The notes: generated from the letters alone by a model not told the origin. DNA of 64,000 nt from Macrostomum lignano (GCA_002269645.1 NIVC01000034.1:1-64000), one strand, 5' to 3'; shown: positions 3,044 to 64,000, counted from the stretch's first letter. Made by a program: numbers and translations.

Positions 3044-3232
3044 ATGTCATCTATCTTCCAAAAACTTTTGATTCGTCTCTGTGAGTTTTTTTGCATAAAA
3101 TCTGAATGTGTGCCGTTTCTGGGAAAGGAGCACAACGAGGATACTGACGGAGATTCGATCGAGGCTTCGTTCTTTTGTTGCAACTGTCAAACGACTAGCA
3201 TCAATCTAACTGATGATGAAGCGAGTGCGTAA
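3044..3232 (+). CDS. Small Cys-containing hypothetical protein
   Basis: 62-aa ATG-initiated ORF whose stop overlaps the integrase start. No recognisable domain. Confidence 0.3.
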   Translation: MSSIFQKLLIRLCEFFCIKSECVPFLGKEHNEDTDGDSIEASFFCCNCQTTSINLTDDEASA

Positions 3233-6750: not shown

Positions 6751-6964
6751 ACTCGCTAATTTGTGCGTCAAATTGTGTTTGTATCTAGTTGAAATATACA
6801 ATACTGCTTGAAAAGAAGAATTTAAATGCGTTAAGTTATACGCGAAATAAGCTTTGTGTCAAATTGAATTTTGGTTGGGCTTGTAATTAGCTGCATTCAT
6901 TGCGGATAGAATTTAGGTGGATAGACAGGTGTTTGCGTAAAAGTGATTCAGCTAATTGGTTAAT

Positions 6965-8248: not shown

Positions 8249-10841
8249 TCCCCGAAACCATCAGCTGAATCCAATGACACGAATCCCATCGTCCAAATCC
8301 TCTCCAAATCCTATATTAACCTCCCAAAAACCATGTTGTTTTACCTGTGTGCAAAAATTGACTGCCTGCCATCGTCCAGACTGAGACTCTCGTCTGTCTC
8401 CTCTCTCCTCTTTGCTCTCTCATCTCTAATCTCTCCTATCTCCTCTCTGCTCTCTCATCTCTAATCTCTCCTATCTCCTCTCTGCTCTCATCTCCTCGCT
8501 TATCTATCATTTCTCATGTCTACTCTCTTATCTCTCCTCACTACTTTCTCCTCTCAACTTTTTCCTCTCTCCTCTTTTATCTCTTCTCTCTCCTCTCCTT
8601 TATCTCCTCTCTGCTCTCTCATCTCTCTACTTTCTCCCCTCTCCTCTCTCCCTTATCCTCTTGCTTCTCTCTCCTCTCTCTCCCCTCATCTCTACTAATT
8701 TATCTCTTCTCTCTCGTCTTTTGGCTCTACTCCCTCTGTCTCCTCTTTCTCCTCTCTTACCCCTCTCCTCTCTCCTCTCAATTCCTTCATCTCTTCTCTC
8801 GCCTTTATTCTCTTTTTTTCTTTTCTCTAATCTGTCCCTTTTAATTCTCTCTTTTCATGTTCTCTTTCATCTAATCTTTTATCTACTCTAGCCTTTTCTC
8901 TTTTCTCTATTCCCTTTCAATTTAACCATTTCATCCTCTCCATGAAACAGCTATCATCAAAATCCTCTCCGTTAAACTGCAATCTAGCTTGTATCATCCT
9001 CCTTCAAGCTACAATCCATCGATTTAAAAAAATACTATCTCTATCAAATTTCAGTCAATCAAGACTATGAAACTGAAGTCTATAAAAATATGATTTTTAC
9101 TTGTCTGGGTATACGTCAAAAAATCTTCCAAATCTTCCAAATCCTCCATAAAACCTCTGAAATATCATAGCATGTTTTCCCTGTTTACAAAAATTGACTG
9201 CCATCGTCCAGACTGAGACTCTCTCCTGTCGCCTCTCTCCTCTTTGCTCCTTTATCTAATCTCTTCTTTCTGCTTCCTGCTCTCCATCTCCTCTCTCATC
9301 TCTACTCTTACTTTCTTATCAATCACCTCCCATCTCTCATCTCTCCCCTCTACGCTCTCATCTCTATTTTCTCATCTCTATTCTCTCATCTTTCCCCTTT
9401 TGCTCTCTCATTTGTTTTTTCATCTCTCTCTTCTCTCCCTTCTCTTCTCGCTTCGCTCTCTCCCCTCTTCTCTCTATCTCTTCTCTCATGTCTTCTCTCA
9501 ATTCTCTCTATCTCTCCTCTTCTCTCTCATCTCTCATCTCTACTCGCTTATCTATCGCCTCTCCTCTACCCTGTCCTCTCTCTCTCCTCTTTTTTCTCTC
9601 TCGTCTCTCCTCTCTGCTCTCAATTCTCATACTCCTATTTTCTCTCTTACCCTCTCCCTCTTCATCTCTCATCTTTCCCCTCTTCTCTCTACCGTCTCCT
9701 GTCTCATCTCTCCTCTCTCTTCTCTCTCCTCTGTACTATCTTATCCCTCCTCTCTCCTCCCATCTTTCCTCCCTCCTTTGCTCTCTCATTTTCCTCTCTC
9801 CCCTCCTTTCTTCCCTCTACTTTCTCTTCTCTTCGCTCTCCCTCTTCATCATTCCCGCCTCACTCCCCTCTTCTCTCCCCTCTGGCTCTGTCGTCTTTAA
9901 TCTCTTATCTCTCATACGAGTATCTACTGTCTTTCTATCATCTTTCTATCCTCTCTTCTCCTTGAAATCTCTCTTCTCTTTACTCTCTTATCTGACGGAC
10001 TGAAAGCGCCGATAATCAAACCAATTGAAATTTGTTACCAGCCTCCTCCATTACTGAATTTACTCAAATGATAGCTGGCCTGAATTTGTGTACTCAACCC
10101 CCCCCCCAACTACAATCTTGGCAGAAATTTTAAAAGTATGGAATCGTTTTTTCAATGCTGTGCTTTTTGTTTTCATATTTAAAGCAAATAACTTACATCC
10201 CCGAATTCAGCGTTGCAAGATCCTTCCAGCAATATAAGTCTCTCCTCTCAAAGTTAAAAAAAGGAACAGTTAACGTCTGAACTTCCCGGTTCAAAGCATT
10301 AAGTATCGAGTGTACATTCACCTGCCTGCTGTTTATTCATTGAATTTCACTGCCCAGCTAATATACAGACAGGCTGCCTTTTGAAAGGCGCCGATAGTAA
10401 AACCAATTGAATCTCGACACAGTCCTATCTATCTGTTTACAATGTACATTGCTATGTACACTCAGCCCAAACCAACCCTCCGTTCTGGAGGGAAGCATTA
10501 AATTTAACTGAACCCCCAACACGCGGGGGTTTTATTAGCATTGAACCCAGAACACGCATCAACCACCCCTCCAATACACAGCGACCTGCGGGGGGAGGTT
10601 GGGGTGGTTGTTTTTACAATAATGCCACTGGAGAGGCAAAGTGGCCAAAGAAGGTTAAGAAAACAGTTTTTTGCTTTTTTAACGGACTTGAATTTTAATT
10701 TTTCAACATTAAAATAGCCTATTTGTTGCGTAGGAAAATTTTGAATTGATATATGTAAGTCCCGCATTTGAGCTGCCAGCCGTCTAGGAGGAGATACGCG
10801 TTAAACCCGGCCGGTCGATCGACCCACTCAGCTTTAGATAT
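8187..10841 (-). mobile_element. Non-autonomous Helitron/Helentron-like element, copy A (CT-rich core, internal duplication)
   Basis: On the minus strand it starts TTATATCTAAAGCTGAG and ends with hairpin CTCCG-CCAA-CGGAG (8201-8214) followed by GGCCTCGT(T). No TIR or TSD seen. Confidence 0.5.
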
Positions 10842-12285
10842 AACGAGGCCAACTCCTCCGTTGGCGGAGTAAGGGGATAGAACTCCCATCGCCAGAATTT
10901 CATTCCCTGAAATCCATCAGCTGAATCCAATGACACGAATCTCATCGTCCAAATCCTCTCCAAATCCTCTATTAACCTCCCAAAAACCATGTTGTTTTAC
11001 CTGTTTGCAAAAATTGACTGCCTGCCATCGTCCAGACTGAGAATCTCTCCTGTCTCCTCTCTCCTCTTTGCTCCTTTATCTAATCTCTTCTCTCTGCTCT
11101 CATTTCTCATACTCCTATTTTCTCTCTTACCCTCTCCTTTTTCATCTCTCATTCTTCCCCTCTCCTCTCTACCGTCTCCTGTCTTATCTCTCCTCTCTCT
11201 TCTCTCTCCTCTGTACTCTCTTATCCCTCCTCTCTCCTCCTATCTTTTTTTCTCCCTCCTTTGCTCTCTCATTTTTCCTCTCTCCCCTCCTTTCTTCCCT
11301 CTACATTCTCTTCGCTCTCCCTCTTCATCATTCCCGCCTCACTCCCCTCTTCTCTCCCCTCTGTCGTCTTTAATCTCTCATCTCTCATATCTACTGTCTT
11401 TTCTATCATCTTTCTATCCTCTCTTCTCTCTACTCTCTTATCTGACGGACTGAAAGCGCCGATAATCAAGCCAATTTAAATTTGTCACCCGCCTCCTCCA
11501 TTACTGAAATTACTCAAATGAAAGCTGGCTTGAATTTGTGTACGCAACCCCCCGCCGCCCAACTACAATCTTGGCAGAAAGTTTAAAAGTATGGAAATCG
11601 TTTTTTCAATGCTGTGCTTTTTGTTTTCATATTTAAAGCAAATAACTTACATCCCCGAATTCAGCGTTGCAAGATCCTTCCAGCAATATAAGTCTCTTCT
11701 CTCAAAGTTTAAAATTCGAGGAACATTTAACGTTTGAACTTCCCGATGTAAAGCATTAAGTATCGCGTGTACATACACCTGCCTTCTGTTTATTCATTGA
11801 ATTTCACTGTCCAGCTAATACACAGGGCTGCCTTTTAAAAGGCGCCGGTAATAAAACCAATTGAATCTCTCTGTTTACAATGTACTTTGCTATGTACACT
11901 CAGCCCAAACCCTCCCCCCCCTATTCCTGGGGAATCATTAAATTTTACTGCACCCCCACCCCAACACGCGGTTTTATTAGCATTGAACCCAGAACACGCA
12001 TCACCCACCCCTCCAAAACACAGCGACCCGCGGAAGGAGGTTGGGGTGGTTGTTTTTACAACTATGCCACTGGAGAGGCAAAGTGGCCAAAGAAGGTTAA
12101 GAAAACAGTTTTCTGCTTTTTTAACAGACTTAACTTTTAAATTTTCAACATTAAAATAGCCTATTTGTTGCGTAGGAAAATTATACATTGATATATATAA
12201 GTCTCGCATTTGAGTTGGCAGCCGTCTAGGAGGAGATACGCGTTAAACCCGGCCGGTCGATCGATCCACTCAGCTTTAGATATAA
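10842..12285 (-). mobile_element. Non-autonomous Helitron/Helentron-like element, copy B, head-to-tail with copy A
   Basis: Same termini and the same internal blocks (tctgacggactgaaagcgccgataatcaa; ggaggagatacgcgttaaacccggccggtcgatc). Confidence 0.5.
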
Positions 12286-12348
12286 GAAAGAGAAGATTTG
12301 CTGAACACGGAACACTAAATACAGAACCCTTCAATCTCCGTTAAACTT

Positions 12349-12960
<612 letters not shown>

Positions 12961-15077
12961 TCACCAACCCCAATCCAGTTCTTCCTCAAACCGACGAATC
13001 TCCTCCAATCACCATAAAATCTACATCGTGATTTATTTCCCACCAACCCCAATCCAGTTCTTCCTTAAACCGACCAATCGACCCCTCCCCAAATTTTTCT
13101 CTCCAAAAACTGTGTACACAGCGCAGTTGCTGTGAGACCTGGAACCCTGCCAGACTAGAATAATAACACGCCGACGTAATTCTGGCGCAATAACAAACTT
13201 TATGCTTAGACCCCAGACCGTTATCTATTAAAATTTCTCGCAATATTTTAGTTTATATTTATTGTGCTTCGTGCTGTACCATAAACCGCCTTTACAGTTG
13301 TAAAACTGAGATCAACGGAAAAGAAAACGGTGAGAGCGTCTGTTTTAAGAAAACCGGTTTGGGCGTCAATTTTTTTAAAGAACAAAAATAAGCATAAAAC
13401 TTACATACTATCAAAAATTCGTTTTTTTATTTTTTAACGATATTTGTTGCTGAAGCAGGTTATTTTTCTTAACTTCTATCCAACTAACTAATAATTATGT
13501 CGCCAATTTGTGAATAACGCTCGTACAAGTTCAAACGATTCATTTGAAGTTTTAAAGTTTGACAGAGTTAATGACAAAGTTTTAGTCTTAGTTACTCTTA
13601 AATTTAGTTTATTGAAAGCTTTATATATAAACCTGTCATTTGCATTGCATCTCTCTGCCCTCTTGAGTCCGCCTCTGCCCCCTTGAATTGGACACCCAGT
13701 ACAGTAAATCTCAATAAATTTTCGAAGCCTGACGAAAAATGTTCCTGGTCGATAAAATCCACAAACCAGACAAAATTAGGTGGGCAAGCGCAGAGTGGCC
13801 AAATGAGTGGAAAGGTGAGCAGGATAAATTATAGAAATCAATTCGCCTGATTAGTGAAAATTCATCATAATTTGCTATGCTGCCTACTTAATCTCATTTT
13901 CAGTAGTGTGTGCGACGACTTTGAATTTCGACTTTTTATGCAATTTCTTGTACCCGAAATTCACTGTAATCTATTGTTACTAAGTTTACTATTTTTTATT
14001 GCTTCACTTCAGCTACGACAACCTTCAGTAATAATTTTTTTGCGCATTGAAAGATTTCGCATCCTCAAGGTTTTAAATTCTCATTTTCAACTTTTATATG
14101 CTATAAAACTTTGCTATTCTTAGGAATTTCGAAGCCTATCATTTGTTTTAAATTTCTATAATTAAAAATAAGGAATTCAATCAGTTTGCAGACTGTGTAG
14201 TCAGCTTTATTATTAGTGGCCTCGCTTTCTAAGAATACACCAAATTTTTCCCTTGTGCAGACTCGTCAATCTTAATAACTCCTGCATCAACTGGAACCCA
14301 CTCGCTTATATCAGCGTATTGAAACCCTCAGCCGCAAGTGCAGTGCTTCTTTCTTTTAGTCGTGACAGGTCCGTATATAAACACGTCATCATCCTATCCA
14401 GACAGGCAGACCTTTGCCCGATAATCCTCGTGCCAATCCATTCTACTGTTCCAAACAGTGAACTGCCTGTAGAGCACTTGAGCCACTCAGCTACAAGTTG
14501 ATTACTTCGTCACTAATCCTTGAGAGTTTTCGGTCCTTTCTTTGCTGGACTCCCGCTGGACTACCTGTCTATCTATGCAAGATTTTGTTTCTGTTCTGAC
14601 TTGGCTACAAGACCATTCTACTATACTATCTGCTGTAGTTTTGTTCGTGAGCCGCCAATCTACACTTTGATGAAGTGGTGCCTAGTAAACACACACTAAA
14701 CAGAGGCTGTGGGAAATATTTGAAACTGATTCTACTGCCGAAACCGTAATGACAAATAAGCTGTGTTTGCTAGTCCGATGCCCGTTCGGCTACCGTGCAT
14801 TGAAAATGAATCTATGGACCCTATAGCTACTTGAATCTGGCGTCCACGTGTCCATTATCGATTCGCTTCGCTTTCTACAAATTGTATTATTGTACCCATC
14901 GATCTCTCGACTCTCATTACTTATGATTCATTTTAATTTCAGCTCAATGATGCCAAAGATAAAGCCATATATATTTCTAGTCTTGATAGGTGCTAGATTC
15001 AGCGTCTCTGTATCAAGTCTGGCGCTTCTTAACTATCTTTTACGGTGGAAGCAGGGCAGCTCAGCGATAAATGAAAC

Positions 15078-18000
15078 TGCGGCGCCAAAATGAGTGCCTG
15101 CGGCGCTTAAATGAGTGCCTGCGGCGCCAAAATGAGTGCCTGCGGCGCTTAAATGGTGTCTGCGGCGCCAAAATGAGTGCCTGCGGCGCTAAAATGAGTG
15201 CCTGCGGCGCCAAAATGAGTGCCTGCGGCGCTAAAATGAGTGCCTGCGGCGCCAAAATGAGTGCCTGCGGCGCTAAAATGAGTGCCTGCGGCGCCAAAAT
15301 GAGTGCCTGCGGCGCTAAAATGAGTGCCTGCGGCGCTAAAATGAGTGCCTGCGGCGCCAAAATGAGTGCCTGCGGCGCTAAAATGAGTGCCTGCGGCGCC
15401 AAAATGAGTGCCTGCGGCGCTTAAATGGTGTCTGCGGCGCCAAAATGAGTGCCTGCGGCGCTAAAATGAGTGCCTGCGGCGCTAAAATGAGTGCCTGCGG
15501 CGCTAAAATGAGTGCCTGCGGCGCTGAAATGAGTGCCTGCGGCGCTAAAATGGTGTCTGCGGCGCCAAAATGAGTGCCTGCGGCGCTAAATGAGTGCCTG
15601 CGGCGCCAAAATGAGTGCCTGCGGGGCTTAAATGGTGTCTGCGGCGCCAAAATGAGTGCCTGCGGCGCTAAAATGAGTGCCTGCGGCGCTAAAATGAGTG
15701 CCTGCGGCGCTAAAATGAGTGCCTGCGGCGCTGAAATGAGTGCCTGCGGAGCTAAAATGGTGTCTGCGGCGCCAAAATGAGTGCCTGCGGCGCTAAAATG
15801 AGTGCCTGTGGCGCTAAAATGGTGTCTGCGGCGCCAAAATGAGTGTCTGCGGCGCTAAAATGAGTGCCTGCGGCGCTAAAATGAGTGCCTGTGGCGCCAA
15901 AATGAGTGTCTGCGGCGCTAAAATGAGTGCCTGCGGCGCTAAAATGAGTGCCTGGGGCGCTAAAATGAGTGCCTGCGGCGCTAAAATGAGTGCCTGCGGC
16001 GCTGAAATGAGTGCCTGCGGCGCCAAAATGAGTGCCTGCGGCGCCAAAATGAGTGCCTGCGGCGCTAAAATGAGTGCCTGCGGCGCTAAAATGAGTGCCT
16101 GCGGCGCTAAAATGAGTGCCTGCGGCGCCAAAATGAGTGCCTGCGGCGCTAAAATGAGTGCCTGCGGCGCTTAAATGGTGTCTGCGGCGCCAAAATGAGT
16201 GCCTGCGGCGCTAAAATGAGTGCCTGCGGCGCCAAAATGAGTGCCTGCGGCGCTAAAATGAGTGCCTGCGGCGCCAAAATGAGTGCCTGCGGCGCTAAAA
16301 TGAGTGCCTGCGGCGCCAAAATGAGTGCCTGCGGCGCTAAAATGAGTGCCTGCGGCGCTAAAATGAGTGCCTGCGGCGCCAAAATGAGTGCCTGCGGCGC
16401 TAAAATGAGTGCCTGCGGCGCCAAAATGAGTGCCTGCGGCGCTTAAATGGTGTCTGCGGCGCCAAAATGAGTGCCTGCGGCGCTAAAATGAGTGCCTGCG
16501 GCGCTAAAATGAGTGCCTGCGGCGCTAAAATGAGTGCCTGCGGCGCTGAAATGAGTGCCTGCGGCGCTAAAATGGTGTCTGCGGCGCCAAAATGAGTGCC
16601 TGCGGCGCTTAAATGAGTGCCTGCGGCGCCAAAATGAGTGCCTGCGGCGCTTAAATGGTGTCTGCGGCGCCAAAATGAGTGCCTGCGGCGCTAAAATGAG
16701 TGCCTGCGGCGCTAAAATGAGTGCCTGCGGCGCTAAAATGAGTGCCTGCGGCGCTGAAATGAGTGCCTGCGGAGCTAAAATGGTGTCTGCGGCGCCAAAA
16801 TGAGTGCCTGCGGCGCTAAAATGAGTGCCTGTGGCGCTAAAATGGTGTCTGCGGCGCCAAAATGAGTGTCTGCGGCGCTAAAATGAGTGCCTGCGGCGCT
16901 AAAATGAGTGCCTGTGGCGCCAAAATGAGTGTCTGCGGCGCTAAAATGAGTGCCTGCGGCGCTAAAATGAGTGCCTGGGGCGCTAAAATGAGTGCCTGCG
17001 GCGCTAAAATGAGTGCCTGCGGCGCTGAAATGAGTGCCTGCGGCGCTAAAATGAGTGCCTGCGGCGCTAAAATGAGTGCCTGCGGCGCTGAAATGAGTGC
17101 CTGCGGCACTAAAATGAGTGCCTGCGGCGCTGAAATGAGTGCCTGCGGCGCTAAAATGAGTGACTGCGGCGCTAAATAGTGTCTGGGGCACTAAAATGAG
17201 TGCCTGCGGCGCCAAAATGAGTGCCTGCGGCGCTGAAATGAGTGCCTGCGGTGCTAAAATGAGTGCCTGCGGCGCTAAAATGAGTGCCTGCGGCGCTAAA
17301 ATGAGTGCCTGCGGCGCTGAAATGAGTGCCTGGGGCGCTAAAATGAGTGCCTGCGGCGCTAAAATGAGTGCCTGCGGCGCTGAAATGAGTGCCTGCGGAG
17401 CTAAAATGAGTGCCTGCGGCGCTAAAATGAGTGCCTGCGGCGCTAAAATGAGTGCCTGCGGCGCTGAAATGAGTGCCTGCGGCGCTGAAATTAGTGCCTG
17501 CGGAGCTAAAATGAGTGCCTGCGGCGCTAAAATGAGTGCCTGCGGCGCTAAAATGAGTGCCTGCGGCGCTGAAATGAGTGCCTGCGGCACTAAAATGAGT
17601 GCCTGCGGCGCTGAAATGAGTGCCTGCGGCGCTAAAATGAGTGCCTGCGGCGCTAAAATGAGTGCCTGCGGCGCTAAATAGTGTCTGGGGCACTAAAATG
17701 AGTGCCTGCGGCGCTAAAATGAGTGCCTGCGGCGCTGAAATGAGTGCCTGCGGTGCTAAAATGAGTGCCTGCGGCGCTAAAATGAGTGCCTGCGGCGCCA
17801 AAATGAGTGCCTGCGGCGCTAAAATGAGTGCCTGCGGCGCTGAACTGAGTGCCTGCGGCGCTAAAATGAGTGCCTGCGGTGCTAAAATGAGTGCCTGCGG
17901 CGCTAAAATGAGTGCCTGTGGCGCTGAAATTAGTGCCTGCGGCGCTAAAATGAGTGCCTGCGGCGCTAAAATGAGTGCCTGCGGCGCTAAAATGAGTGCC

Positions 18001-43457: not shown

Positions 43458-43529
<72 letters not shown>

Positions 43530-45067
43530 CAGTCGTCTCACCTTAGACAGTGTTATAAATCTCTTCGTATAGTCTGCAACAGCTCCGGCCACCCCGGCCC
43601 CAACCAGTCCAGCACCAATCAGCACAGCGCCGCAGATGCCAGCAAACTGATCTGAGTAACCATACGGACACAGAATCTGCTCCAGCAGGGCTGACAATGC
43701 CGTGAACAGGCCCATTCCAGCGCCTACGGCTAGCAACAGTAATCCGAAAGCTCGATTAGTTAAACAGGCACGAATACTCAACCAGAATGTGAGATGCTGA
43801 GCAGCAGCAGATTGATGCAGCTCAGATTCAGCAACACCTGGCGCTTGTCTAGTAAAAATTGACGTAACAACAGAGAACAGCAAAGCAGCTGCCGCAGCCA
43901 TAAAGTACACTAAACTGACTAACGGCAGGTCAGTTTTCGATTTCACTAGCAGAGGCGATAGGATATTAGTGAGCAGAATTCCCAATGGATTGGACATGCT
44001 GCCCAGTGTGTTAGCAGTAGCCCGCTGGCTGACAGGAAATTCTGACGCAACAGCAGTTGGAGAAAACATGAAGAATGGCTGAGCAATGGCAGCTGTAATT
44101 TGGCCAGCCAATGCCAGAGAGAATGATGGTTGAGCTAGTATGGCGCTAGCGTACCGCATGGCGCCACCAGATGCACTGAAAATGGCGCCAATTAGAAGAC
44201 CGGTGCGAACGCCAAGTCTGTGTTGTGGGGAAGATTATGGAGAGTTGGCTTCTGTTAATAGCAATTCCAGTGTCAGTCATAAAAATAATTTTCAATAAAA
44301 TGTACACAGGCATCAAATGGGAATTATTTGGATAGTTATGTGCTCAAGGGGAATTATTTGGATAGTCATGTGCTCAAGGGGAATCATTTGGATAGTCATG
44401 CGCTCAAGGGGAATTATTTGGATAGTCATGTGCTCAAGGGGAATTATTTGGATAGTCATGTGCTCAAGGGGAACTATTTGGATAGTCATGTGCTCAAGGG
44501 GAATTATTTGGATAGTCATGTGCTCAAGGGGAATTATTTGGATAGTCATGTGCTCAAGGGGAATCATTTGGATAGTCATGTGCTCAAGGGGAATCATTTG
44601 GATAGTCATGTGCTCAAGGGGAATTATTTGGATAGTCATGTGCTCAAAGGGAATCATTTGGATAGTCATGTGCTCAAGGGGAATTATCGAGATGGTAGTG
44701 TTCTTGAGGGGAATTCTTATGAAAGCAAATTGCTCCTCAAGGGTATTAGTCAAATAGACAATAAATAAATGATAAATTTTGCAAGTATTTACCTATCCAG
44801 ACAATATGCAGTTGGCAAGCCAAAAACCAGTGAAGCAAGAGGATAGACAAGAGCCAGCCAGTTAACACCATCAGCAGTTACATTATAGAACAACTGAGTA
44901 TAGTCAGCAATGGCTGAATAAGTTATCCATAGGGCAGCATTGGATACATTCAACAAACCCAATGTTAACACTAAGAACCAGCGATTAAAAAGTGTTCTAA
45001 TTGTAGCAGTATCGTTTGAGTCATTGCTGCTATGAACTAGATATACTGTTCCACTGTTGCTCTCCAT
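41261..45067 (-). CDS. SLC49A3: MFS transporter, SLC49 (FLVCR) family, SLC49A3/MFSD7-like; complement(join(41261..41767,43542..44217,44793..45067)), 485 aa
   Basis: [21 protein letters not shown]|LGVR, FSPT...[26 protein letters not shown]. All junctions are GT-AG and in phase. Confidence 0.85.
41865..42510. repeat. (TCTA)n microsatellite followed by (ACT)n
   Basis: Direct reading. Confidence 0.95.
43124..43528. repeat. (TCTA)n microsatellite
   Basis: Direct reading. Confidence 0.97.
44320..44690. repeat. 30-bp intronic minisatellite (tgctcaaggggaattatttggatagtcatg)
   Basis: Direct reading. Confidence 0.93.
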
Positions 45068-46875: not shown

Positions 46876-49177
46876 TTTGTATTTTCTCAGCTATGTGAGA
46901 ATGAAATTCTAACATTACAATTTAAAAAACCTAAAAATAGGTTTTGGAGTTATTTTTTATATCCAATTTTTATAAACATGTAGCCGCGATGTAGGCTGAG
47001 GCTAAGGGGCAAGACCTAGTAGGGCTAGGCCTACTTTGTGTCATTTGTGATTAGGTTAGGCTAGGCCAAGCAGCTTCCAGACAATCCGGCGACATTGACA
47101 AGATGATCCAGCGACAGACAAACTGGCAACAGTCAAATTGGCGATAGACGATCCAGGGACAGATTTTGTATTGTATATAGATTTTATAGATTTTAGATAA
47201 AAATTTATATATAAAACAAAACTTTACATGAACTATTCTAGTTTTCAATTTTATACGTAGAGATAAAGAATTCACCTTAGGACAATAATTATATCTTTTC
47301 TAATAAAAATTTTACATTATGTCCGTACTTCTGGCAGTTTAGGATATCACGACTAACATCAAACGCATTTTAGGCCCTAATATATCTGCAGATGATAAAA
47401 CTATACGTAGTGTGTGGCCATTAGTGAAAATATAAAAGAATGCTTTGATTTATTGCAGTTCCCCATTTTTAAAACAATACATGTATATGTATCATAAATA
47501 TAAGAAAACAAGCTATTGATAGTTGATCCAAATTTACACATTTTGAACCTGATAAATTCCAATTCTCTTAGTCTCAGTTATTTTTGCATACATTCTAATA
47601 AAAAAGTTAATAACAATTATAATAAAAATAATAATCATAATAGTTATAACAATAAAAGCTCTGTTTAATCTGTTTAAATAGCAATCACTGGCTTTCATGT
47701 AATAGCTTTTTACTATAAATTGTTGCCGGACCGGATTGACTGTCGCCGGATTGACTGTCACCATTTTGACTGTCGCCAGATTGTCTGTTGCCGGATTGAC
47801 TGGAAACCAGCCTAGCTATAGCCACCTAGGTCCATCTAAGCAGAGGACATAATATCTTTGTTGCATGTTGATGTTCTGTAAAATGCATTGCACTAGGCCT
47901 AGTTTAAATACTAATTTATAAAACTAAATTGACAATATGACTTAGTCTCGGCCTAACCTTAGCCTTAAATTATTATTTATTTTTAATTTTTAGAACTATC
48001 TTTAGCAACCCAAATTTAACATAGACTTATTATTAGACCCCCAACACTATACTCCACTCAAAGGCAGATTTAGAAATATACCCAACAATAGCCCCCCCCC
48101 CCTAGTCAAAAGTTCTAGTTCCTAGTTATTTCATTACCTGCCATTTTGTCATCTATGATATCTGGGGTGCTCACCTTGACTAGGCCTAAGGTCACTTTGT
48201 CATCTTAATTAGCATGCACTACCTGAAGAGAATCATTTTGTCAATGACCAATTATATTAGTTCTAATTTCCAAGTGAATTAATGTTGCAATTAAATATAT
48301 TTAGGCCTATTTAGAATCCTAATGATCCCAGTCAGTTTGTCATCTCTATTATAAAACCTATTAATTGATTGGTTCTGCTTACTGCAGCTTATAGTTTATA
48401 AAGGCAAAAATAGTTTCTACTAACTCAAATCTTACATAGATTGATTGGTTGATAATGAAATGTCTAGCATAACTAAATATTTGGTCACTTTGTCATCTTT
48501 TTTTTCAAAGCTACTTTGTTTCTAGTTACTTCATCATCCAATAAAACAAAATTGAATATATGACAGTCTGACTAGTGACCTTATCTACTAAGCAAACTAC
48601 CATTTCTATTTAGACTTTATGAATTTTCAATGAGAAGTTTTGTCTCTAACTAGGCCTGGCTATGTGCAATTTATATAGGTGCTATTTTTTATTAGTTGCA
48701 GGGGGTTGTGTGCACTTTAAGCCACATAGGCACACAACCAGCAAGAGGCATTACTGCCCATTCCGCTGACTCCCCTGAGCAGGCATACAAGTGTGTGGAT
48801 ATGTACGCTGGCACATACTAACATAGGATTTTCATAGAGAGAAGTTTCCCCTGCAACAATTTGGTGGCATAATTCAAAAAATAGGACTAAGCCCTATAAC
48901 ATAAGCTCTTGTTGAAAAGGATCCAAAATTTTATGTCTAAGACCTTGTTGACTTTGTAGAAATTGAAAAAAATAGCAAAGGAACAAAATTTTGACTGAGG
49001 ATTTGCACCTTTAAAAAGTTTCTACTGCCATAGAAACAACTTTTTCAATAAGCGCAAGGTGGAAAATAAGATAGTGGATATAAATGAACAATACTAGTAT
49101 AAAGAAAACAATAGCTGCTGGCTTGGCCAAGGAAATATATAACTATTTGATTTGTAGATAGTTAAGGGACTATTATA

Positions 49178-49427
49178 TGTCAACTTAAGCTTATAAAGTG
49201 AGCTGAGTCTTTTCAAACTGCAACTATAAATAACTAATTTTGCTAATTTGGTAACTAATAACTTATCTATCTAGAGTCTCTATAATTATCCCCTTGCTTG
49301 TTCTCTGTCCCAAGTCCAATTTTAGTCACTGCCAAACCCTGCTTCCTGGTATCACTGTGAGCAGAATGTATCATTTGTGTACATAGGTTACTTGGGCTCC
49401 ACTTTATGAGCTTAAGTTGACAGGGCC
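49178..49427. mobile_element. MITE, copy 2 (same family as 46362-46875)
   Basis: Same TIRs and shared internal blocks (cccttgcttgtt, aagtccaa, tcactgtga). Confidence 0.7.
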
Positions 49428-50175
49428 TTTAACCATGCATCATTGTGTAATATTACATTTAAAAAATCTGGCTCCCCAGTATACACAGCATTATATTGCC
49501 CAGGACCTTTTTTATATATAATAATTTTCTCAAAAAAGCAAAATTAGTTATTTATAGTTGTAGTTTTAAATTAGTTTTAGCTTTGATAAGATCATAATTT
49601 TATTCTTTATCTAGGTTTTATATGACTAGTTTTAAATTCAAGCTTTACTTATATATAGTATAGGCTAGAATTATTATTTATTCTAATTTTGAGTAGGTTT
49701 TCATGCCTTGTTTAAAGTTAGGGTTGATAAAAGCAATCATTATAAAAATCTTTATATCCTGAAACAACCCATTGACCATGCCCTAATGGTTGGCTATTGA
49801 CCATTTGGTTGGGTTAAGTTTAGGTTGATTAAATCAATTCTTATGAAAAATCCCCCATCTCAATACTATAGTTGTTGGCTTTAAGCTGAGTATTGGCTTT
49901 AAGCTGAACTAATTGCAGTCTGTAGTATGCAACTAAAACTGCCACTTATAAAGATCTGGCTAAGAGTGACCTGTAACTCATTGGCAGGCTATTATTACAC
50001 ACAGGGGTGACTATTTTGTTGGACAAATATAACATGATTTTTATATATTCTAGCTAATTATAGTTCATTAAAAGTACAAGAACCTTCTAAACGACCAGAT
50101 GCTATCTGGTTAATTGTCTGTCATTTTTCTACTTTTTTAGACAAATTTTCCAATGGATATTCCATAATCTCATTC

Positions 50176-56453
<6,278 letters not shown>

Positions 56454-57317
56454 ATCTGACTGTCCATTATTAATTAAAGATTAATCTGCTACAAAGAGCT
56501 ACAGAATTCTACAAAGTGTTACAGAGTTCTGTAAAGGGCTAAAGTGTTCTACAAAAAAACTGCATGGTGCTAAAAACAGTTACAACCAGCTTTGTAGCTC
56601 TTTACATTGAAAAACATGCCTTGCAGAATATTGTTGAGATAATTTTTTAAAGATTTGATTATTTTAATTAAAAAATAGTTAACTTTCTCTCATTAACACA
56701 CATCCGGTGCTTTCATTTTTTGTGAATTTTTCAATAATATTTTACAGATATTCGTAAATATAGTTTATATGTACAACAACTAATTGATTGCTTAGGTGAC
56801 TGTCACTGATTGCAATATTGAAATATTTTTTTCGAGGATTTTTTAGCGTAAAGTGCTAAGCCGTGCTTAATACCACGTTTTAGCATCTATAATGTTTTCA
56901 TTATTTTTCAAAGATTACTATGCTGTGCAAATTGCTATATCTTATTGCGCCCCATTGTATGCTTGAATTAATTGATAGAATTTTTCTAATTATATTTTCT
57001 GTTCAAAAAATACAATGAAAGAAATTTTATCTCGACGTATTGCTCTTTGTGTTTTTGATAAATTTATTTAATTTTTATTATAGCAAACAAGGTCTACTCT
57101 TGTGGATGATAGAATTGCCTCAGCGCTAGCGCTGTATTTGCAATACATCTGTCATTATGATAAATAGTTTAGATCATTATATCATATACCACCAGTTATA
57201 TTAATATCATAGTCATAAATCTTACCAAACTACCGGTACAAAACTTTATGCTCTTCAAGCAAATTATCTGCAAATAATTAAAAATTGTTCTAAAAAATCG
57301 ACTAGTAAACACCCGAG

Positions 57318-57387
57318 ATGTCTGCTTTAACTCCTCGAATGTCGGGAGCAATCGTCTGCCTCCTAGTGCTTATCGTCGGTGTACCAG
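57318..57387 (+). CDS. Leader (signal peptide) exon of the MAM-like variable-exon gene
   Basis: MSALTPRMSGAIVCLLVLIVGVP+G, hydrophobic core, strong donor G|GTAAGT, phase 1. Confidence 0.8.
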
Positions 57388-57463
57388 GTAAGTGCAACGC
57401 TTTCGTTGCTTATTAAAATTACCCAATCAAAATATGAAAGACTTTAAATAAAGTATTCAATAT

Positions 57464-57488
57464 TTGGCAAGGCTCGTTGCTCCATTCT
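57464..57488 (+). promoter_or_regulatory. Putative intronic docking site TTGGCAAGGCTCGTTGCTCCATTCT
   Basis: Reverse complement (AGAATGGAGCAACGAGCCTTGCCAA) matches the motif found upstream of each variable exon. Confidence 0.85.
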
Positions 57489-57813
57489 CTATATAGTTGA
57501 AAAATTGGCTAATATGATAAAATAATTTTTTTCGAATGAGTTGCCTGAGTAGTTTAAAAATATTGTCTTTAAATTTTTTTGAATGGGGCTAAGATGCGCA
57601 TTTTTTCACGAATTTGTGATTCATTGTAACAAAACAAAATATGATAATTAATTATCTAATTAATTTGCTTGAATTTATATTTAAAATCAGTAGCTTTAAG
57701 TTATTATAATGCGATTAGGAGTTAACGAGATTCTTTCATATCATACGCTCGTACATGATCAATGTGTTTGCAAAAATTGTTGCTCTAGCGTGCATCGATT
57801 GCGCCTACTCTAG

Positions 57814-58198
57814 GGGTGCAAAATTCACTGGCTGTTTTTGACGATTCGGTGTCAGTTTCGTGCGACTTTGAACAGCAACATTCTGCTGCTAGTAGAAGTT
57901 CGTCAAAAACTGATTCTCAGTTCTGCAACTGGGTAGATTTAGCCTGGAAACCGGGCAGTGCTTGGCAGATTCGCTATCTGACAGAGTTCAACACTCAGGC
58001 TGTCTGTCTGCACGGCGGCTCAGCCAGACTGCAGAGTCCCTGGTGGATTGATTCTGCTAGTAGCAATTTCAGGCGTCAGAGTGCTCAGTGCTTGTCGTTT
58101 GCTTATCACGTAACTCCTAACAATCAATTAGGAGATTCATCGAAGTCTTCTATCGAAACTGACTTACCTCAACTGGCTTTATTGAAGAATACTCACGG
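57814..58198 (+). CDS. Variable exon V1, MAM-like N-terminal part
   Basis: 385 nt, phase 1 to 2. CDFEQ..CNW..W..CL..ARLQSPW..CLSFAY..LLKNTHG. Weak selector GGAGTTAACGAG at 57718-57729. Confidence 0.82.
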
Positions 58199-58490
58199 GT
58201 AAGTTTAGGTTTTTATTAACTCAAGGGAAAAACGTCTCTTGCCAACAGCACAAACTCGTGCATCTTTCTAACGATAGAAATCACTTAGTCAATTGACCTT
58301 TTTTCTCGGAAAGCATCCCTGACGACATGCATTGTTAAAACATAACATTACCACCTCTAACAGGACTTGTGGCTTAGTTTTTTTAGTGATATCGCAATTA
58401 GTCCTTGTATAAGTTTATGGAGCAGCGAGTCTGCTCCGAGATTTCCTACATAAAGTCTACTGCTTATAATTATTAATATGCTTTATGCAG

Positions 58491-58881
58491 TGTTGGAGGC
58501 AGTTGCAGTCAGTACTGGAGCTAGTGTAATGGAAGAAGAGTCCCTATCAACGGATCGCTGGTCAAGCGACGGTTATAATCGGGAATTAGAATGGCGTCGA
58601 TTTGCTATTCATAGCAGTCTGAACGCTGGTTCTCCTGCCTCGTCAGTTAACGTTAGAACCGGATCTGCAATTACGAATAGTTGGTGCACAGCTGGATTGA
58701 TTCCTTCACCGTCGGTTGCTGTGTCTGGTCGGTTGTTAAGCGACTGGGTGCGCAGCGGCCGCGATAGCAGCAATGGACTCTGCTTGTCGTTTAGTTATCG
58801 TATCGACTATGGACCAGAACGACGGAAAAGCGATGTTGACGATACCGCCGCAGTGTTGGCTCTTCTAAGGCGATCGTCGGG
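58491..58881 (+). CDS. Variable exon V2
   Basis: 391 nt, phase 1 to 2, ends LLRRSSG|GT. Selector ATGGAGCAGCGAGTCT at 58417-58432. Confidence 0.8.
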
Positions 58882-59021
58882 GTTAGAAAAATGCTTTGAT
58901 TTATGTTCTGTTTTTTGCATTTGCTTAGCAACGAGCCTTAGCTTAATTGATTGTGTTCGTACTTAGCTTGGCTGGTAACTTGAGAAAATTATTTATAATT
59001 ACCAACGCTTCGATTGCGCAG

Positions 59022-59385
59022 CGAGTTCACTTTCGTCGTCTGGTAGTGCTAACCGAATGGTTATTAAACAGCTCACCTGCAGTGGTAGCGGTTTCGGCAG
59101 TAGTTCTCAATCTTGTAATTGGTTCAACGATATCGGCTATAATACTGAGGCGCATTGGAAGTTGGCTAGCATTGCCGATTCGGATGGTAGCGCTGCCACC
59201 GCTGCCACTTATCGAACCAGTTATTGCGCAGTTGTCACTGGCGGTGCTACTAGCGCACAGCTTGTATCGGCTAGATTTGTTAGCCTATTCATTGCTAGCA
59301 GTTCGGTCAGCGAAGGCTGCATGCAGTTCTCTTACCAGCTAGTTGATCGGCAGAGTCAATTGCAATTGTTGAAGCGCAATTCCGG
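59022..59385 (+). CDS. Variable exon V3
   Basis: 364 nt, phase 1 to 2, ends LLKRNSG|GT. Selector AGCAACGAGCCTT at 58927-58939. Confidence 0.82.
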
Positions 59386-59535
59386 GTATGAGAATTGAAA
59401 AACACTATTATAGCTATATAACTAGTCATTATTAATGTCCTGTTGCAACGAGCCTTGTAGAAAATTAGTCAGAATTGGGAGTTTAGCAGTTACACGATTT
59501 TACAGTGATTGATTGCTGCTTTCACTGTATTTCAG

Positions 59536-59878
59536 CCTTTGGTTTATCAAACAGCAGATTTAGTGGCTTTGACATTAAAGCTTTGCAATGTCAAAGCAAT
59601 GGCGCTGATACATGTCTATGGAGCGATGACAATGGCTACAATACAAAAGCGCACTGGAAGCTGGCTGCTGTGCAGTCTTCGCCAGACTCTCCGTTACACC
59701 GATCAGCTTTCTGCATGGTTCCAATAAATCCTAGCGTCACGGCTGCGACCTCAATTTCGGCTAGATTTGTCAGCTTATTTCTCTCCGAACCGATTGAGTC
59801 CGCCTGCTTGCAGTTTGTGTATCAGTTGGTACCTGCAGCCTCAGCTCCATCGCTCCAGTTGCTTAAACGTCACTCTGG
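59536..59878 (+). CDS. Variable exon V4
   Basis: 343 nt, phase 1 to 2, ends LLKRHSG|GT. Selector GCAACGAGCCTTG at 59445-59457. Confidence 0.82.
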
Positions 59879-59995
59879 GTAAATTGCACAGGATTCCCCT
59901 TTAATTTTTTTTCGAATAGGATGGAGCAACGAAACCTTGATTGACCAAAACTCTGTTGATAATTTAGTAAAATAATGGCTTGAAAAATAATCTAG

Positions 59996-60305
59996 TTACC
60001 GGTCTATCTGATGAAGCTGTAAAACAATTGCACTGCGATAGTGGATCCCGCTGCTATTGGCTAGATGACAGTTACAATACTGACGCCCACTGGCAGTTGG
60101 CTACTGTTACTGAGAGTTCTCGCTTTCAAACGCACTATTGCCTAATTAGAGATGTGTCGGCGCTTAAACGTGTAACTAAGGCTCGTTTTGTTAGCCGCTT
60201 TGTTACTGACAGCAAAGTGGGCTGTTTGCACTTTCGCTATCTGATCAGTCAGCAGGATGATGAGTTAAGTGGTGCGGATCTGCACCTGCTTCGACGGAAT
60301 CGAGG
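59996..60305 (+). CDS. Variable exon V5
   Basis: 310 nt, phase 1 to 2, ends LLRRNRG|GT. Selector ATGGAGCAACGAAACCTTG at 59921-59939. Confidence 0.8.
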
Positions 60306-60474
60306 GTATGGCGCTGGTTTCTTTTGTACTCTTAGTTATGATGCTGCATGATTACTTACTGTTATTTTAAACTTGTTCAAACAAACACGAGCAACGAGCC
60401 TTGACTAGCTTGCAGTTTCTTTATAAACTGATAATTATATAGTCCAGGTTATACATTAGATGGCTCTCTTGCAG

Positions 60475-60760
60475 CAACTAAAATAGATCTGCAGTGCACA
60501 GCTCGAGGTCACTGTGCCTGGCTCAACGACGTTTTCAATCGTCTGCACTGGACCTTGGCAGACGTTGGTGCAGTTGCTGGTGGTAACACTGGCCTGTGTC
60601 TTGTACCTCAGTCGGTGTCGTCATCTTCTGTTGGTAGCGATGCAGGCGGTCAATTTGTCAGTCCGACGGTATTTTCTAAAGTTAGCGGTCAGATGTGTCT
60701 TCAGTTTGTCTACTGGACTGCTGGTCGAGCTAAATTGAATCTATTAAAGCGCAGTTTAGG
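60475..60760 (+). CDS. Variable exon V6
   Basis: 286 nt (alternative same-phase acceptor at 60460), ends LLKRSLG|GT. Selector GAGCAACGAGCCTTG at 60389-60403. Confidence 0.8.
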
Positions 60761-60902
60761 GTATGATTTATCATTTTAGCGATGCTTGAACCGTCAAGAT
60801 ATATTTAGTTAATTTGATTTGATGCAACGAGCCTTGTCTAAAGTTTCTGTTTATAATAGATCTTTAACGACTACATTGACTCTTTCGGAAAATCAATTTT
60901 AG

Positions 60903-61257
60903 CCGGTACATTAGCTGCAGTGTCAGTACCCGAGTTAACGTGCATAAGTACGTCAGCTAGCCCTTGCACTTGGCGCGACGATCAAGATAATATTGACGCT
61001 CATTGGCGCGCCTCCTTGTATCCGTCGGCTGCATTTCAGTCACCGCGATGTCTAGTGCCGGAGCCAAGCGTTTTGTCGGGTTCTAGCTACTCTAGCTCAC
61101 GACCCTTAACCGTAGCTCGGTTTGTTAGCCAATGGCTTACTGGCAGACGTGGTGATATGTGTCTTCAGTTTGCCTATCGAATTGATCAACCGATGGCTAC
61201 TCGTAAAGAGACAACTGTTGCTGGTGCTGGATTAAGCTTGCTGAAACGGAGCAGAGG
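60903..61257 (+). CDS. Variable exon V7
   Basis: 355 nt, phase 1 to 2, ends LLKRSRG|GT. Selector GCAACGAGCCTTG at 60824-60836. Confidence 0.82.
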
Positions 61258-61415
61258 GTATGAGTTGGCTATAAAAATAATGCAAAAAACGTGAAATAAC
61301 TGGAGTAACGAGCTTTTGTCATAAAATTTCAGTTAGTGTCCTTGGAATTTTGGCTTAAATATTGTAAGAGATGCATGTCTAATTATTTAACTGCTAGACT
61401 GTTTTTCCACCTCAG

Positions 61416-61734
61416 CGACGCTTGAACAGTTGTCCTGCCACGCTGGCGGTCACTGCAGTTGGCGTGATGATTTCGACAATAAAGGCGCCCACTGGGTGTC
61501 CGCCCTGGATGCTGCAAGCGACGCGTCCTCGTTAGGCAGCGGCAGATCGCACCTGTGCTTGGTTCAGAGCGGACCTCAGCCGCACAGTTTAGTGACTGGT
61601 CGCTTTGAGAGTCACTGGATTGCTGCCACTAAATCTGATAATGAGCAGCAGTTGTCGCCATCTGTTTGCCTCACGTTCAGCTACTTGACGGCGCCGCGGG
61701 AGGTGTCGCTGAGTTTGCTCAAGCGAAACTGGGG
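61416..61734 (+). CDS. Variable exon V8
   Basis: 319 nt, phase 1 to 2, ends LLKRNWG|GT. Selector TGGAGTAACGAGCTTT at 61301-61316. Confidence 0.82.
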
Positions 61735-61847
61735 GTAAAAGAAATTGAGTTTAAATTTTGTTTACTTTGTGAGCAATGAGCTTTGCCATTAGTTATTGCT
61801 TGTATTTTAAAATTGTTTTTGTGACGCTTGCCTGAACATGAATTCAG

Positions 61848-62205
61848 CTTCTAAAATGGCTGACGAACGTCTTGCTTGTTCTTCGAGCACTTCGGCAATC
61901 TGTGCTTGGCGAAACGATCTTGACAACAAAGACGGCGCTTGGAAAATGACGCTGGAGCCGCCTGGCTTTAGCCGCGCAGCACTCTCGTCTTACTGTTTGG
62001 TTCCTATCAGGCGTCCAATGTCATCTGGCAGGAGTTCTGTCAGTCTAGTTGCTGAATTTCATAGCGCTTGGGTGTCTGGAGGGACGACAGGATCAGACCC
62101 TAGTGCTGGTCAATTGTGTCTTCAGTTTGCATTTAGAGTGAAGGATTCGTTCCATTCTTCTAGTGCCAGCGCGGCAAAACTGGTTCTGCTAAAACGCGTC
62201 TCTGG
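61848..62205 (+). CDS. Variable exon V9
   Basis: 358 nt, phase 1 to 2, ends LLKRVSG|GT. Selector GAGCAATGAGCTTTGCCA at 61771-61788. Confidence 0.82.
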
Positions 62206-62331
62206 GTAGGAGTTTTTGCATCATGTTTATTCCCGCTTCTTTAGGCGAGCCTTGCCAAGTTTATTGAATTTGATAGCACACCTGTGGTAGCTGAAATTGT
62301 AACCGTTTTTTATGTCTTTTTTTCAAATAAG

Positions 62332-62674
62332 TTACCCACTGCGTTTCGGTTGACTGCTCCTCAAAATTGCCAAATGTTTGCACATGGAGCGACGGTCAAT
62401 TCAATCGAGCTGCCAACTGGAAGGTCGCAATTGACTCCAATAGTCGCTGTGCTTCCTATTGCCTCGTTCCAAATAAGATTAGGTCTCAAGCGATGACGTC
62501 ATCACGTAGCTCTTCGGCACAGGCTTACACTGGAAGCTTTCTTAGTGGCTGGATTGTCGCTGAAGAGTCAAGACAGAATCCAATGTGTCTGCAATTCAAT
62601 TACAAGTTTGTTCTAGCAGAGCCAGTAATATCCAAGCCTGGATTGCAACTGGCTTTGTTAAAGCGTACATTTGG
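62332..62674 (+). CDS. Variable exon V10
   Basis: 343 nt, phase 1 to 2, ends LLKRTFG|GT. Selector GGCGAGCCTTGCCAA at 62244-62258. Confidence 0.82.
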
Positions 62675-62796
62675 GTATGTTTTTGGATTAAATTGGAGCA
62701 ACGAGTCTTATTAATCAATTTTTAGCTTGATAAAAAATGCATCAAGTTTAATTAGTATATGTAAAGCATCTAGAACTCGTAAATGCCCTCTTATAG

Positions 62797-63115
62797 CCGT
62801 CTCAATTGATTGCTCATCGACCTCGCCTACTTTTTGCACTTGGAGCGATTCACCTTTTAATCGGGCAGCCAATTGGAAGGCCGCAATCGATCCCAGCGTT
62901 CGTAGCGGTGGTAGAAGCGCGTCCTATTGCTTGATTCCAAATAGACCAGTAGCTACAGAAGACACTACTCACAGCGGTAGCTTTCTTAGTAATTGGATAA
63001 CCAAAACGAAAGAATCCGGTTCGCCAGAGCAGCAGATGTGTGTTCAGTTTGCGTACAAGTTTATTGGTTCGCCAATGACTAGAATGCATCTGGCTCTGTT
63101 AAAGCGTTCATATGG
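62797..63115 (+). CDS. Variable exon V11
   Basis: 319 nt, phase 1 to 2, ends LLKRSYG|GT. Selector TGGAGCAACGAGTCTT at 62694-62709. Confidence 0.82.
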
Positions 63116-63245
63116 GTAAGGTCTAAAACCTGTCAGGTAAAAGTGAGCTTTTTACAGTAGAGTTTCTTTGAGCAACGAGTCCTTGTGTATGCTGCTTTTT
63201 CATTTTTGCTATAGGTACGTTTGTACTTGTTTTATTGCGTTATAG

Positions 63246-63576
63246 TGACATGTCTTGCCTCTTCGATTAATTGCTCGTCCAATTCGCCTATGCTCTGCTC
63301 GTGGAGCGATTATCCATTCAATCGAGCCGCTAATTGGAAGGCAACAATCGATTCTAATAGTCGTTCGTCCTCTTATTGTTTAATTCCTAATGCGGCTTTG
63401 GTGATGCCTATTAATGCAGCGTCTGAACAAGGATTTGCGGCCAGCTTTATTAGCGGTTGGATCGCTGGAAAAAACCAACGCTCGATGTGCTTGCAGTTTG
63501 CGTATAAATTTTTAGTGTCATCTCAATTGCCTGAACGTAGGCAGTCTTCTCTGGCATTATTGAAACGTTCATTTGG
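63246..63576 (+). CDS. Variable exon V12
   Basis: 331 nt, phase 1 to 2, ends LLKRSFG|GT. Selector GAGCAACGAGTCCTTG at 63170-63185. Confidence 0.82.
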
Positions 63577-63872
63577 GTATGCTTTTATTTCAACTGATGC
63601 GATAAAAAAATGAGTACAAAAAGGTTCTGCTGCCCCCATAGATTAAAAAATTTCGTCAGGAGCGATGCATTGAAAAGCCTTAAAATGCGTCGTATGTTTG
63701 GTCATGAAGCTTTACTCCGGGCCTCTGTGAGACTGTATATTCGGGTGCAACAAAAAACTACTCCGTCTCTTAGAAGTAAAAGTTTTGAGATGGAGCAATG
63801 AGCCTTTATAATGTTAATAGAGTGGAAGTATGATGACGCATGATGCATTTTCTCTGAAAATAATTACTATAG

Positions 63873-64000
63873 CTACTTCGTCGACACATTTAATTGACTG
63901 CTCATCGAGCTCTCCTATGCTTTGCGCATGGAGCGATGATCCTTACAATCGAGCAGCCAATTGGAAGGTGGCCATCGACCCCAGAACTGGCCACTCGTCC
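63873..64000 (+). CDS. Variable exon V13 (runs off window)
   Basis: Phase-1 acceptor, ATSSTHLIDCSSSSPMLCAWSDDPYNRAANWKVAIDP. Selector ATGGAGCAATGAGCCTT at 63790-63806. Confidence 0.8.

Follow-up and report, generated by a model that had tools for sequence, protein, structure and literature searches.

In the arthropod genes 14-3-3 xi, Mhc and MRP1, competing RNA pairings govern clusters of tandem exons. Clusters of the same kind are found in srp (PMC4691838) and PGRP-LC (PMC6191721), and docking site and selectors have been described for the exon 6 cluster of Dscam1 in insects and crustaceans (PMC1431710, PMC3535345, PMC8791459, PMC12962786). Vertebrates have competing structures at exons 7a and 7b of ATE1 (PMC7797038). 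In the model of Ivanov and Pervouchine (2018; PMC6071210), an ancestral stem arm is duplicated together with an exon, giving rise to many selectors that face one docking site. Here we analyze the 5′ part of gene BOX15_Mlig029915g2 of Macrostomum lignano, a free-living flatworm and thus a non-arthropod. The window, i.e., the whole stretch of 64,000 nucleotides (nt) under analysis, is the first 64 kb of contig NIVC01000034.1 of assembly GCA_002269645.1. Our verdict is that the exon array at its right end represents a new non-arthropod example of the known docking/selector mechanism: one docking site and a series of competing selectors probably pair in the sense pre-mRNA and thereby choose one of 14 exons.

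As in Dscam1 exon 6, a single docking site lies in the intron just after the upstream constant exon. A selector precedes each variable exon (here 13 of 14), the selectors are overlapping complements, the choice would be mutually exclusive, and the tandemly duplicated exons encode part of an extracellular recognition domain. Unlike Dscam1, the domain is a single MAM domain rather than immunoglobulin domains, the phylum is Platyhelminthes rather than Arthropoda, and the exons number 14 as against 48 in the fly. The introns measure 113–300 nt, the first exon is without a clear selector, and the system is known from sequence alone; a repressor, a locus control region and balancer structures were not identified at the M. 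lignano locus. With 14-3-3 xi, Mhc, MRP1, srp and PGRP-LC the array shares the principle that competing intronic pairings pick one tandem exon. Those clusters, however, hold 2–8 exons and several have downstream or bidirectional docking, whereas both M. lignano clusters (see below) have upstream docking. The ATE1 elements likewise compete within introns for one partner and enforce a mutually exclusive choice outside the arthropods, but there two exons and multi-element, ultra-long-range structures are involved, not a large diversifying array.

The Variable Exon Array

Constant exon 1 (57318–57387, 70 nt; all features of the array lie on the plus strand) contains the ATG and the signal peptide MSALTPRMSGAIVCLLVLIVGVP, ends in phase 1, and is followed by a GTAAGT donor. 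Next comes cluster A, a set of 14 tandem variable exons, 13 of which are inside the window and one, V14, just outside. V1 (57814–58198, 385 nt) is the exon that the annotated mRNA model contains; it fits in phase and frame, and tblastn matches it at 100% to residues 24–152 of the annotated product, PAA93052.1 (P0128), the N-terminus of which is exactly exon 1 plus V1. Phase, frame and the tblastn survey define the others: V2 (58491–58881, 391 nt), V3 (59022–59385, 364 nt), V4 (59536–59878, 343 nt), V5 (59996–60305, 310 nt, with an alternative acceptor possible at 60017), V6 (60475–60760, 286 nt), V7 (60903–61257, 355 nt), V8 (61416–61734, 319 nt), V9 (61848–62205, 358 nt), V10 (62332–62674, 343 nt), V11 (62797–63115, 319 nt), V12 (63246–63576, 331 nt), and V13 (63873–64000), which runs past the window end and is complete in the contig. 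Acceptors were picked to keep the frame, which gives 13 exons, the complete ones being 286–391 nt long.

The open segments each end in ...LLKRxxG|GTA. Each V exon encodes the N-terminal ~95 positions of a MAM domain, and the encoded proteins share just 19–57% identity. All complete V exons have a length of 1 mod 3, and a splice from neighbor to neighbor leads to a stop within 2–19 codons. The possibility that all V exons are constitutive MAM repeats was rejected, since joint inclusion shifts the frame and each exon codes for only part of a domain.

Docking Site and Selectors

Docking site A (TTGGCAAGGCTCGTTGCTCCAT, 57464–57485, 22 nt) lies 77 nt past the exon 1 5′ splice site and is the sole inverted copy of the selector motif. 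The perfect 22-mer complement has a single exact match, at 57464–57485 on the minus strand, with zero matches at three or fewer mismatches in 100 shuffles. The 12-nt selector core, allowing two mismatches, has 11 plus-strand matches between 58420 and 63804 at a spacing of ~470 nt, where chance gives 4.0 ± 1.8. Unbiased complement scans of the locus recover docking site A as well.

Selectors are found for 13 of the 14 exons (V2–V14), each 47–94 nt before the V-exon acceptor and 18–217 nt past the previous donor in these very short introns. RNAduplex pairing of the docking site with each intron gave, for V2–V13, free energies (ΔG) of −27.0 to −34.2 kcal/mol, the unit used throughout, with z-scores of −4.3 to −8.0 relative to dinucleotide shuffles. 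Uninterrupted Watson–Crick helixes are formed by the selectors of V6 (60389–60403, 15 base pairs (bp), ΔG −32.1) and V3 (58927–58939, 13 bp, followed by a 1-nt bulge, ΔG −27.0). Helixes with one G-U pair are those of V4 (59445–59458, 14 bp, the G-U terminal, ΔG −28.4), V7 (60824–60838, 15 bp, ΔG −30.5), V13 (63790–63806, 17 bp, a C>T change, ΔG −31.0) and V11 (62694–62709, 16 bp, then a C-A mismatch and four further pairs, ΔG −29.2). Two G-U pairs occur in the selectors of V2 (58417–58432, 16 bp, from A>G and C>T; ΔG −32.3 vs. −22.6 for the antisense duplex), V8 (61301–61316, 16 bp, C>T twice; −31.3 vs. −20.2) and V9 (61771–61788, 18 bp, C>T twice; −34.2 vs. −26.3). The V10 selector (62244–62258) combines 13 Watson–Crick pairs with two terminal G-U pairs and binds the docking 5′ end (local duplex ΔG −27.6). 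In the V5 selector (59921–59949), a 12-bp helix is followed by AA replacing G, i.e., a mismatch plus a bulge, and then by CCTTG and CCAA (ΔG −28.2); it is the sole selector with a stronger antisense duplex (−29.6). The V12 selector (63170–63187) has a 10-bp helix, a 1-nt U bulge, and then CCTTG (ΔG −27.5). Just outside the window, GCGAGCCTTGCCAA lies upstream of V14 (ΔG −30.0).

Every sequence quoted in a preliminary description of this DNA is present in its place, and the irregularities it gave for the V5 and V12 selectors at 59921 and 63170 are there, the former as G>A plus a 1-nt insertion and the latter as the 1-nt bulge. It also held that the selectors use different registers of the docking site. 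They do: the helixes range from docking nt 57464–57477 through 57474–57485 and overlap at the center. The docking 3′ end is reached by V2, V5 and V13, with V8 and V11 stopping one nucleotide short; the 5′ end is reached by V10 and V14, with V9 stopping one nucleotide short; and V3, V4, V6, V7 and V12 take central registers. All of the longest helixes include docking nt 57474–57477, and most include 57471–57480. As every selector needs nt 57474–57477, a single pairing at a time is expected.

Some exon sequences also resemble one or the other partner. The 10-mer scan additionally flagged a sequence in the V5 exon, AAGGCTCGTT at 60178–60187, which encodes K-A-R-F and matches the docking site over all of its 10 nt; V3, V4 and V7 contain related ARFVS codons. 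Selectors could therefore pair with the V5 exon too. Codons for a conserved W-S-D motif (ATGGAGCGACG / TGGAGCGA) in V10 (62384–62394), and also at 59619, 62851, 63303 and 63930, resemble the selector 5′ half; those in V10 would form an 11-bp helix with one G-U pair on the docking site. This complementarity may be an intron–exon pairing of the “balancer” type or a coincidence.

Intron Background and Conservation

The preliminary description stated that the rest of the introns is unalignable, and our comparison agrees. With selectors and splice-site ends masked, 2 of 66 intron pairs reached p < 0.05 against dinucleotide shuffles (3.3 expected; median p 0.58), and the only k-mers common to many introns are selector k-mers. 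Since the introns are saturated and the exon proteins have diverged so far, the duplications are old, and an island of 12–18 nt is not a neutral residue. The selectors are thus under purifying selection.

The locus is present in two more assembled copies, L018 and L019, which have an identical docking site and the same exon order. L018 shows three differences from the window copy across the array and, being almost identical, adds no information. L019 diverges at 62 of 2095 (3.0%) other intron positions and at 0.8% of exon positions, as compared with 3 of 286 (1.0%) selector and docking positions. Only two of these three are substitutions, both C/T in the V8 selector (C at 61306, T at 61313) and each opposite a docking G; they switch between G-C and G-U in opposite directions. 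The third, a gap of one base, falls outside the helix. With the docking site invariant, there is no true double compensatory change. A metagenome scan with the docking 18-mer returned 15 single chance matches and no array.

Substitutions within the Helixes

Internal substitutions were defined without regard to type, as single mismatches that have exact matches to either side in an ungapped alignment to the perfect complement. With at least two flanking matches, 8 of 8 are wobble-compatible (seven C>T and one A>G on the selector strand); with at least three the count is 6 of 6, and with at least four, 5 of 5. The exceptions are the V5 change described above and the 1-nt bulges of V3, V8 and V12.

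The neutral model was HKY (Hasegawa–Kishino–Yano) with base frequencies taken from the introns (A.30, C.15, G.17, T.38) and a kappa of about 4, the latter obtained from two 97%-identical retrotransposon copies with 84 transitions and 45 transversions (transition fraction 0.65). Under it, a wobble-compatible share of 0.40 is expected, giving P = 0.0007 for 8/8, 0.004 for 8/9 with V5 counted against, and 0.02 for 6/7. At a kappa of 10, P is about 0.02 to 0.06. When the eight substitutions were redrawn under this model and the duplexes refolded, the summed energy equaled or surpassed that of the real selectors in 0.3% of trials with kappa set to 4 and in 1% with kappa set to 10. The summed duplex energy of V2–V13 is −359 kcal/mol in the sense orientation vs. 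−313 in the antisense, and the sense duplex is the stronger in 11 of 12 selectors; a perfect duplex has −43.0 kcal/mol on either strand. CpG is not depleted in the array (observed/expected = 0.98); CpG decay, or a methylation artifact, was therefore rejected as the cause of the two ACG>ATG changes.

Thus, the wobble pattern is real and statistically moderate. The preliminary description had it that selector variation is almost entirely G-U compatible, and proposed a comparison of substitution classes with a neutral model as a check. The first claim stands inside the helixes but not over all 22 columns, where 25 of 85 differences are compatible; it follows that the wobble claim holds inside helixes only. 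The comparison with neutrality came out favorably as to P (0.0007–0.02) and CpG bias, but less so in the strictest strand contrast, C>T vs. G>A, at 7:0 or 7:1, for which P is 0.02 to 0.07.

A Second Cluster in the Same Gene

Gene locus L017 is 100% identical to window positions 47318–64000 and continues beyond the window. There, a tblastn search with PAA93052.1 as the query, together with a survey of reading frames, revealed cluster B, about 20 short tandem exons (L017 18000–25300), each coding for the next MAM piece and each ending in GAYTTYAAR|GT (...DFK). An intact SC...DFK frame and a length of 1 mod 3 are found in 17 of them. The cluster B introns share TGAAGTCTTC and GCTGCCAA, which are complementary to TTGGCAGCGGGGAAGACTTCAAGGTACCTTG, docking site B, located in the intron between clusters A and B (L017 17708–17750, equal to 65025–65067 of contig NIVC01000034.1). 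The B2–B19 duplexes have free energies of −26 to −42 and z-scores of −1.8 to −8.8, the sense duplex being the stronger in 14 of 18. The docking/selector sets of clusters A and B are unrelated in sequence and have the same layout. We regard this second, unrelated set as the strongest single argument for a functional layout.

Docking site B includes a copy of the B-exon end and 5′ splice site (GACTTCAAG|GTA) and a palindrome, CAAGGTACCTTG. Given that copy, B selectors could also pair with, and mask, the preceding exon's donor.

A Model for Exon Choice

The most likely mechanism is that established for Dscam1 exon 6. The docking site would pair with a single selector at a time in the pre-mRNA. 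Pairing would loop out the intervening exons and bring the exon 1 donor to the acceptor 47–94 nt beyond the paired selector, such that the exon downstream of that selector is joined to exon 1. Within the helixes, substitutions that leave the pairing intact (C>U facing G, A>G facing U) would be tolerated, while other changes would shorten a helix or shift its register and should tune how often an exon is chosen. Pairing strength is thereby predicted to set exon usage. Unselected exons would presumably be kept silent by weak splice sites or by a repressor, and transcripts with two V exons, being frameshifted, would enter nonsense-mediated decay as a fail-safe. That the pairing forms in vivo and activates the exon downstream of the selector is what we infer from these features.

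Pairing in RNA is well supported by the layout and modestly by the wobble count alone. It is supported because an inverted docking copy follows the constant-exon donor and 13 selectors of the same sense precede the acceptors, and because 12–18 nt are conserved in saturated introns beside strongly diverged exons. Further support comes from the competition of the selectors for the same docking center, together with exon lengths of 1 mod 3, and from cluster B, which repeats the layout, as well as the two C/T differences of L019 opposite a docking G.

Several observations weigh against this reading. Docking pairing leaves unexplained how the donor of the chosen exon skips the remaining A exons. 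No convincing V1 selector was found, although V1 is the exon of the sole clean annotated model. The preliminary description had counted a site at 57718 as a selector with a bulge or mismatch; the candidate, a degenerate AGGAGTTAACGAGATTCTTTCAT at 57717–57739, is no better than shuffles (ΔG −17.5, z −0.9) and has nothing but its location, 75 nt ahead of the acceptor, in its favor, which leaves V1 without a credible selector. As the exon nearest to the docking site, V1 may be the default choice made without pairing. In cluster B, the antisense duplex is the stronger for 4 of 18 selectors. Complement scans of partial loci from Schistosoma bovis and Paragonimus, which recovered the M. lignano control, yielded G/U-rich noise only and no docking/selector pair. 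The remaining points concern the substitutions. The wobble signal amounts to eight events, seven of them C>T, which is also the most frequent neutral change where introns are rich in T; the strictest strand contrast and the count over all columns are as given above; and the internal changes of cluster B, with 5 of 8–10 compatible, two to three incompatible transitions and one to two transversions, are not significant alone.

Alternative Explanations

These last points could mean that pairing is real and that the wobble pattern reflects mostly mutational bias and ascertainment, so that it is no independent signature of pairing. Helix-ending mismatches are left out by construction, as incompatible changes define the helix ends, and the introns are 38% T; the low compatible share over 22 columns, the cluster B counts and the P of the C>T vs. 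G>A contrast all fit such a bias. Yet the definition of internal substitutions is blind to type, and G>A, expected about as often as C>T, is seen in 0 of 8. The energy simulation (P 0.003), the two inter-copy differences, both C/T opposite a docking G, and a CpG ratio that betrays no hotspot also speak against such a bias. We consider this explanation unlikely, though it is the most serious of those discussed here. It is decidedly less probable that the repeated motif is a site for a sequence-specific RNA- or DNA-binding factor that marks V exons, the inverted copy being incidental or bound by the same factor on double-stranded DNA. The core GCAACGAGCCTTG is indeed kept in V3, V4, V6 and V7 far better than pairing alone needs. 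However, 13 of 13 selectors have one orientation and the sole inverted copy sits exactly at the expected docking position; the retained sub-segments vary, V10 and V14 being without the 5′ half and V2, V5 and V13 without the 3′ end; the substitutions are strand-asymmetric; and cluster B shows the same layout built on another sequence.

The preliminary description set selection on pairing in the sense pre-mRNA against both a DNA-binding motif and a residue of duplication. Pairing in the pre-mRNA is supported, but duplication residue is a false choice. Most likely, the selectors arose by duplication along with the exons and were later kept by selection, as in the model of PMC6071210. That model accounts for how selectors originate, so residue and selection do not compete as explanations but follow one another in time. 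The model, an evolutionary one that does not address one locus, fits the M. lignano array, where the flanks have since diverged to saturation. A probable origin by duplication also lends some color to the notion that the motifs are leftovers of tandem duplication without function, or were homogenized by gene conversion. This is very improbable, as a neutral island of 12–18 nt could not persist where the rest of the introns is saturated and the exons are 19–57% identical, and conversion would have homogenized the flanks too, which it has not. Finally, the array superficially resembles gene-segment arrays flanked by conserved signals, and its inverted and direct repeats might be read as signals for DNA recombination by which the exons would be rearranged somatically. 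We give this almost no credence: recombination between docking site and selector would invert, not delete, the exons between them, the order is the same in three assembled copies, and splice sites and phases are ordinary.

The Gene Product and the Surrounding DNA

A profile of 13 V-exon peptides, run against 1.8 billion representative proteins, led to PAA93052.1, annotated as a “MAM domain-containing protein”. It consists, in order, of a signal peptide, a single MAM domain, a transmembrane helix and a cytoplasmic tail. At full length it scores 32.3 bits against the Pfam MAM profile (PF00629), above the gathering cut-off of 26.4. Single V exons match profile positions 1–95 of 158 and reach at best 23.7 bits, under that cut-off, because each encodes only part of a domain. 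The annotated model splices exon 1, V1, one B exon and the last exon, i.e., one A and one B exon. The gene product is probably a single-pass membrane protein, the one extracellular MAM domain of which is assembled from alternative exons.

Other gene models are less orderly. An older one joins V2 with pieces of V3 and V11 and resembles a prediction artifact. P0114 (UniProt A0A1I8GW98) and the flatworm models P0117, P0118, P0122 and P0125 string several alternative exons together or are fused to the lyase neighbor. Public models of this multi-exon or lyase-fused kind look like prediction artifacts due to the exon arrays. A homology search with the V7 peptide, an exact look-up of four open reading frames (ORFs) of the window, and Rfam gave no match, and literature searches yielded no description of this gene or of any docking/selector array in a MAM-domain gene.

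Upstream of the gene, window positions 1–57000 are largely minisatellites with units of 14–92 nt in arrays of up to 3 kb. Here lies a chromodomain long terminal repeat (LTR) retrotransposon, the integrase ORF of which (3213–4373) is 98% identical to an M. lignano protein; a contig with a near-identical integrase was rejected as a second copy of the locus, as it holds only another copy of the retrotransposon. An exon of an SLC49A3/MFSD7-like transporter lies at 43515–44159 on the minus strand, and a gene for a beta-eliminating lyase at about 50180–56450.

Related Genes in Flatworms and Significance

Gene models with several ...LL[KR]xxxG units are found in Schistosoma, Heterobilharzia, Paragonimus, Cichlidogyrus, Echinococcus, Hydatigera, Hymenolepis, Spirometra and Dibothriocephalus. 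Seven tandem units encoding the MAM N-terminal part lie at 9995–16377 of the Schistosoma bovis locus (L020), and four at 5555–8786 of the locus from Paragonimus skrjabini miyazakii (L021). The best candidate docking site of the S. bovis locus, at 8456, was rejected for its duplex energy (z −2.4 to +0.7).

Until now, large docking/selector arrays have been characteristic of arthropod genes, most notably Dscam1. The finding of a 14-exon array and a second cluster of ~20 exons in a flatworm suggests that the mechanism arises readily wherever tandem exons duplicate. Transgenesis has been reported in M. lignano, and this compact, short-intron system is suited to experiments on the way in which isoform frequencies depend on pairing strength and register. 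The homologues in Schistosoma, Paragonimus, Echinococcus and other parasites carry no annotation beyond that of hypothetical MAM proteins. They are possibly variable surface proteins, and the gene models behind them are probably in error. We tentatively raise the idea, which we hold to be possible rather than probable, that flatworms independently evolved a Dscam-like generator of diversity: two clusters, each with its own docking/selector system, would combine as 14 × ~17–20 exons into ~240–280 isoforms, and a family spread across the Platyhelminthes, schistosomes and tapeworms included, may thus form a previously unrecognized variable system of surface recognition.

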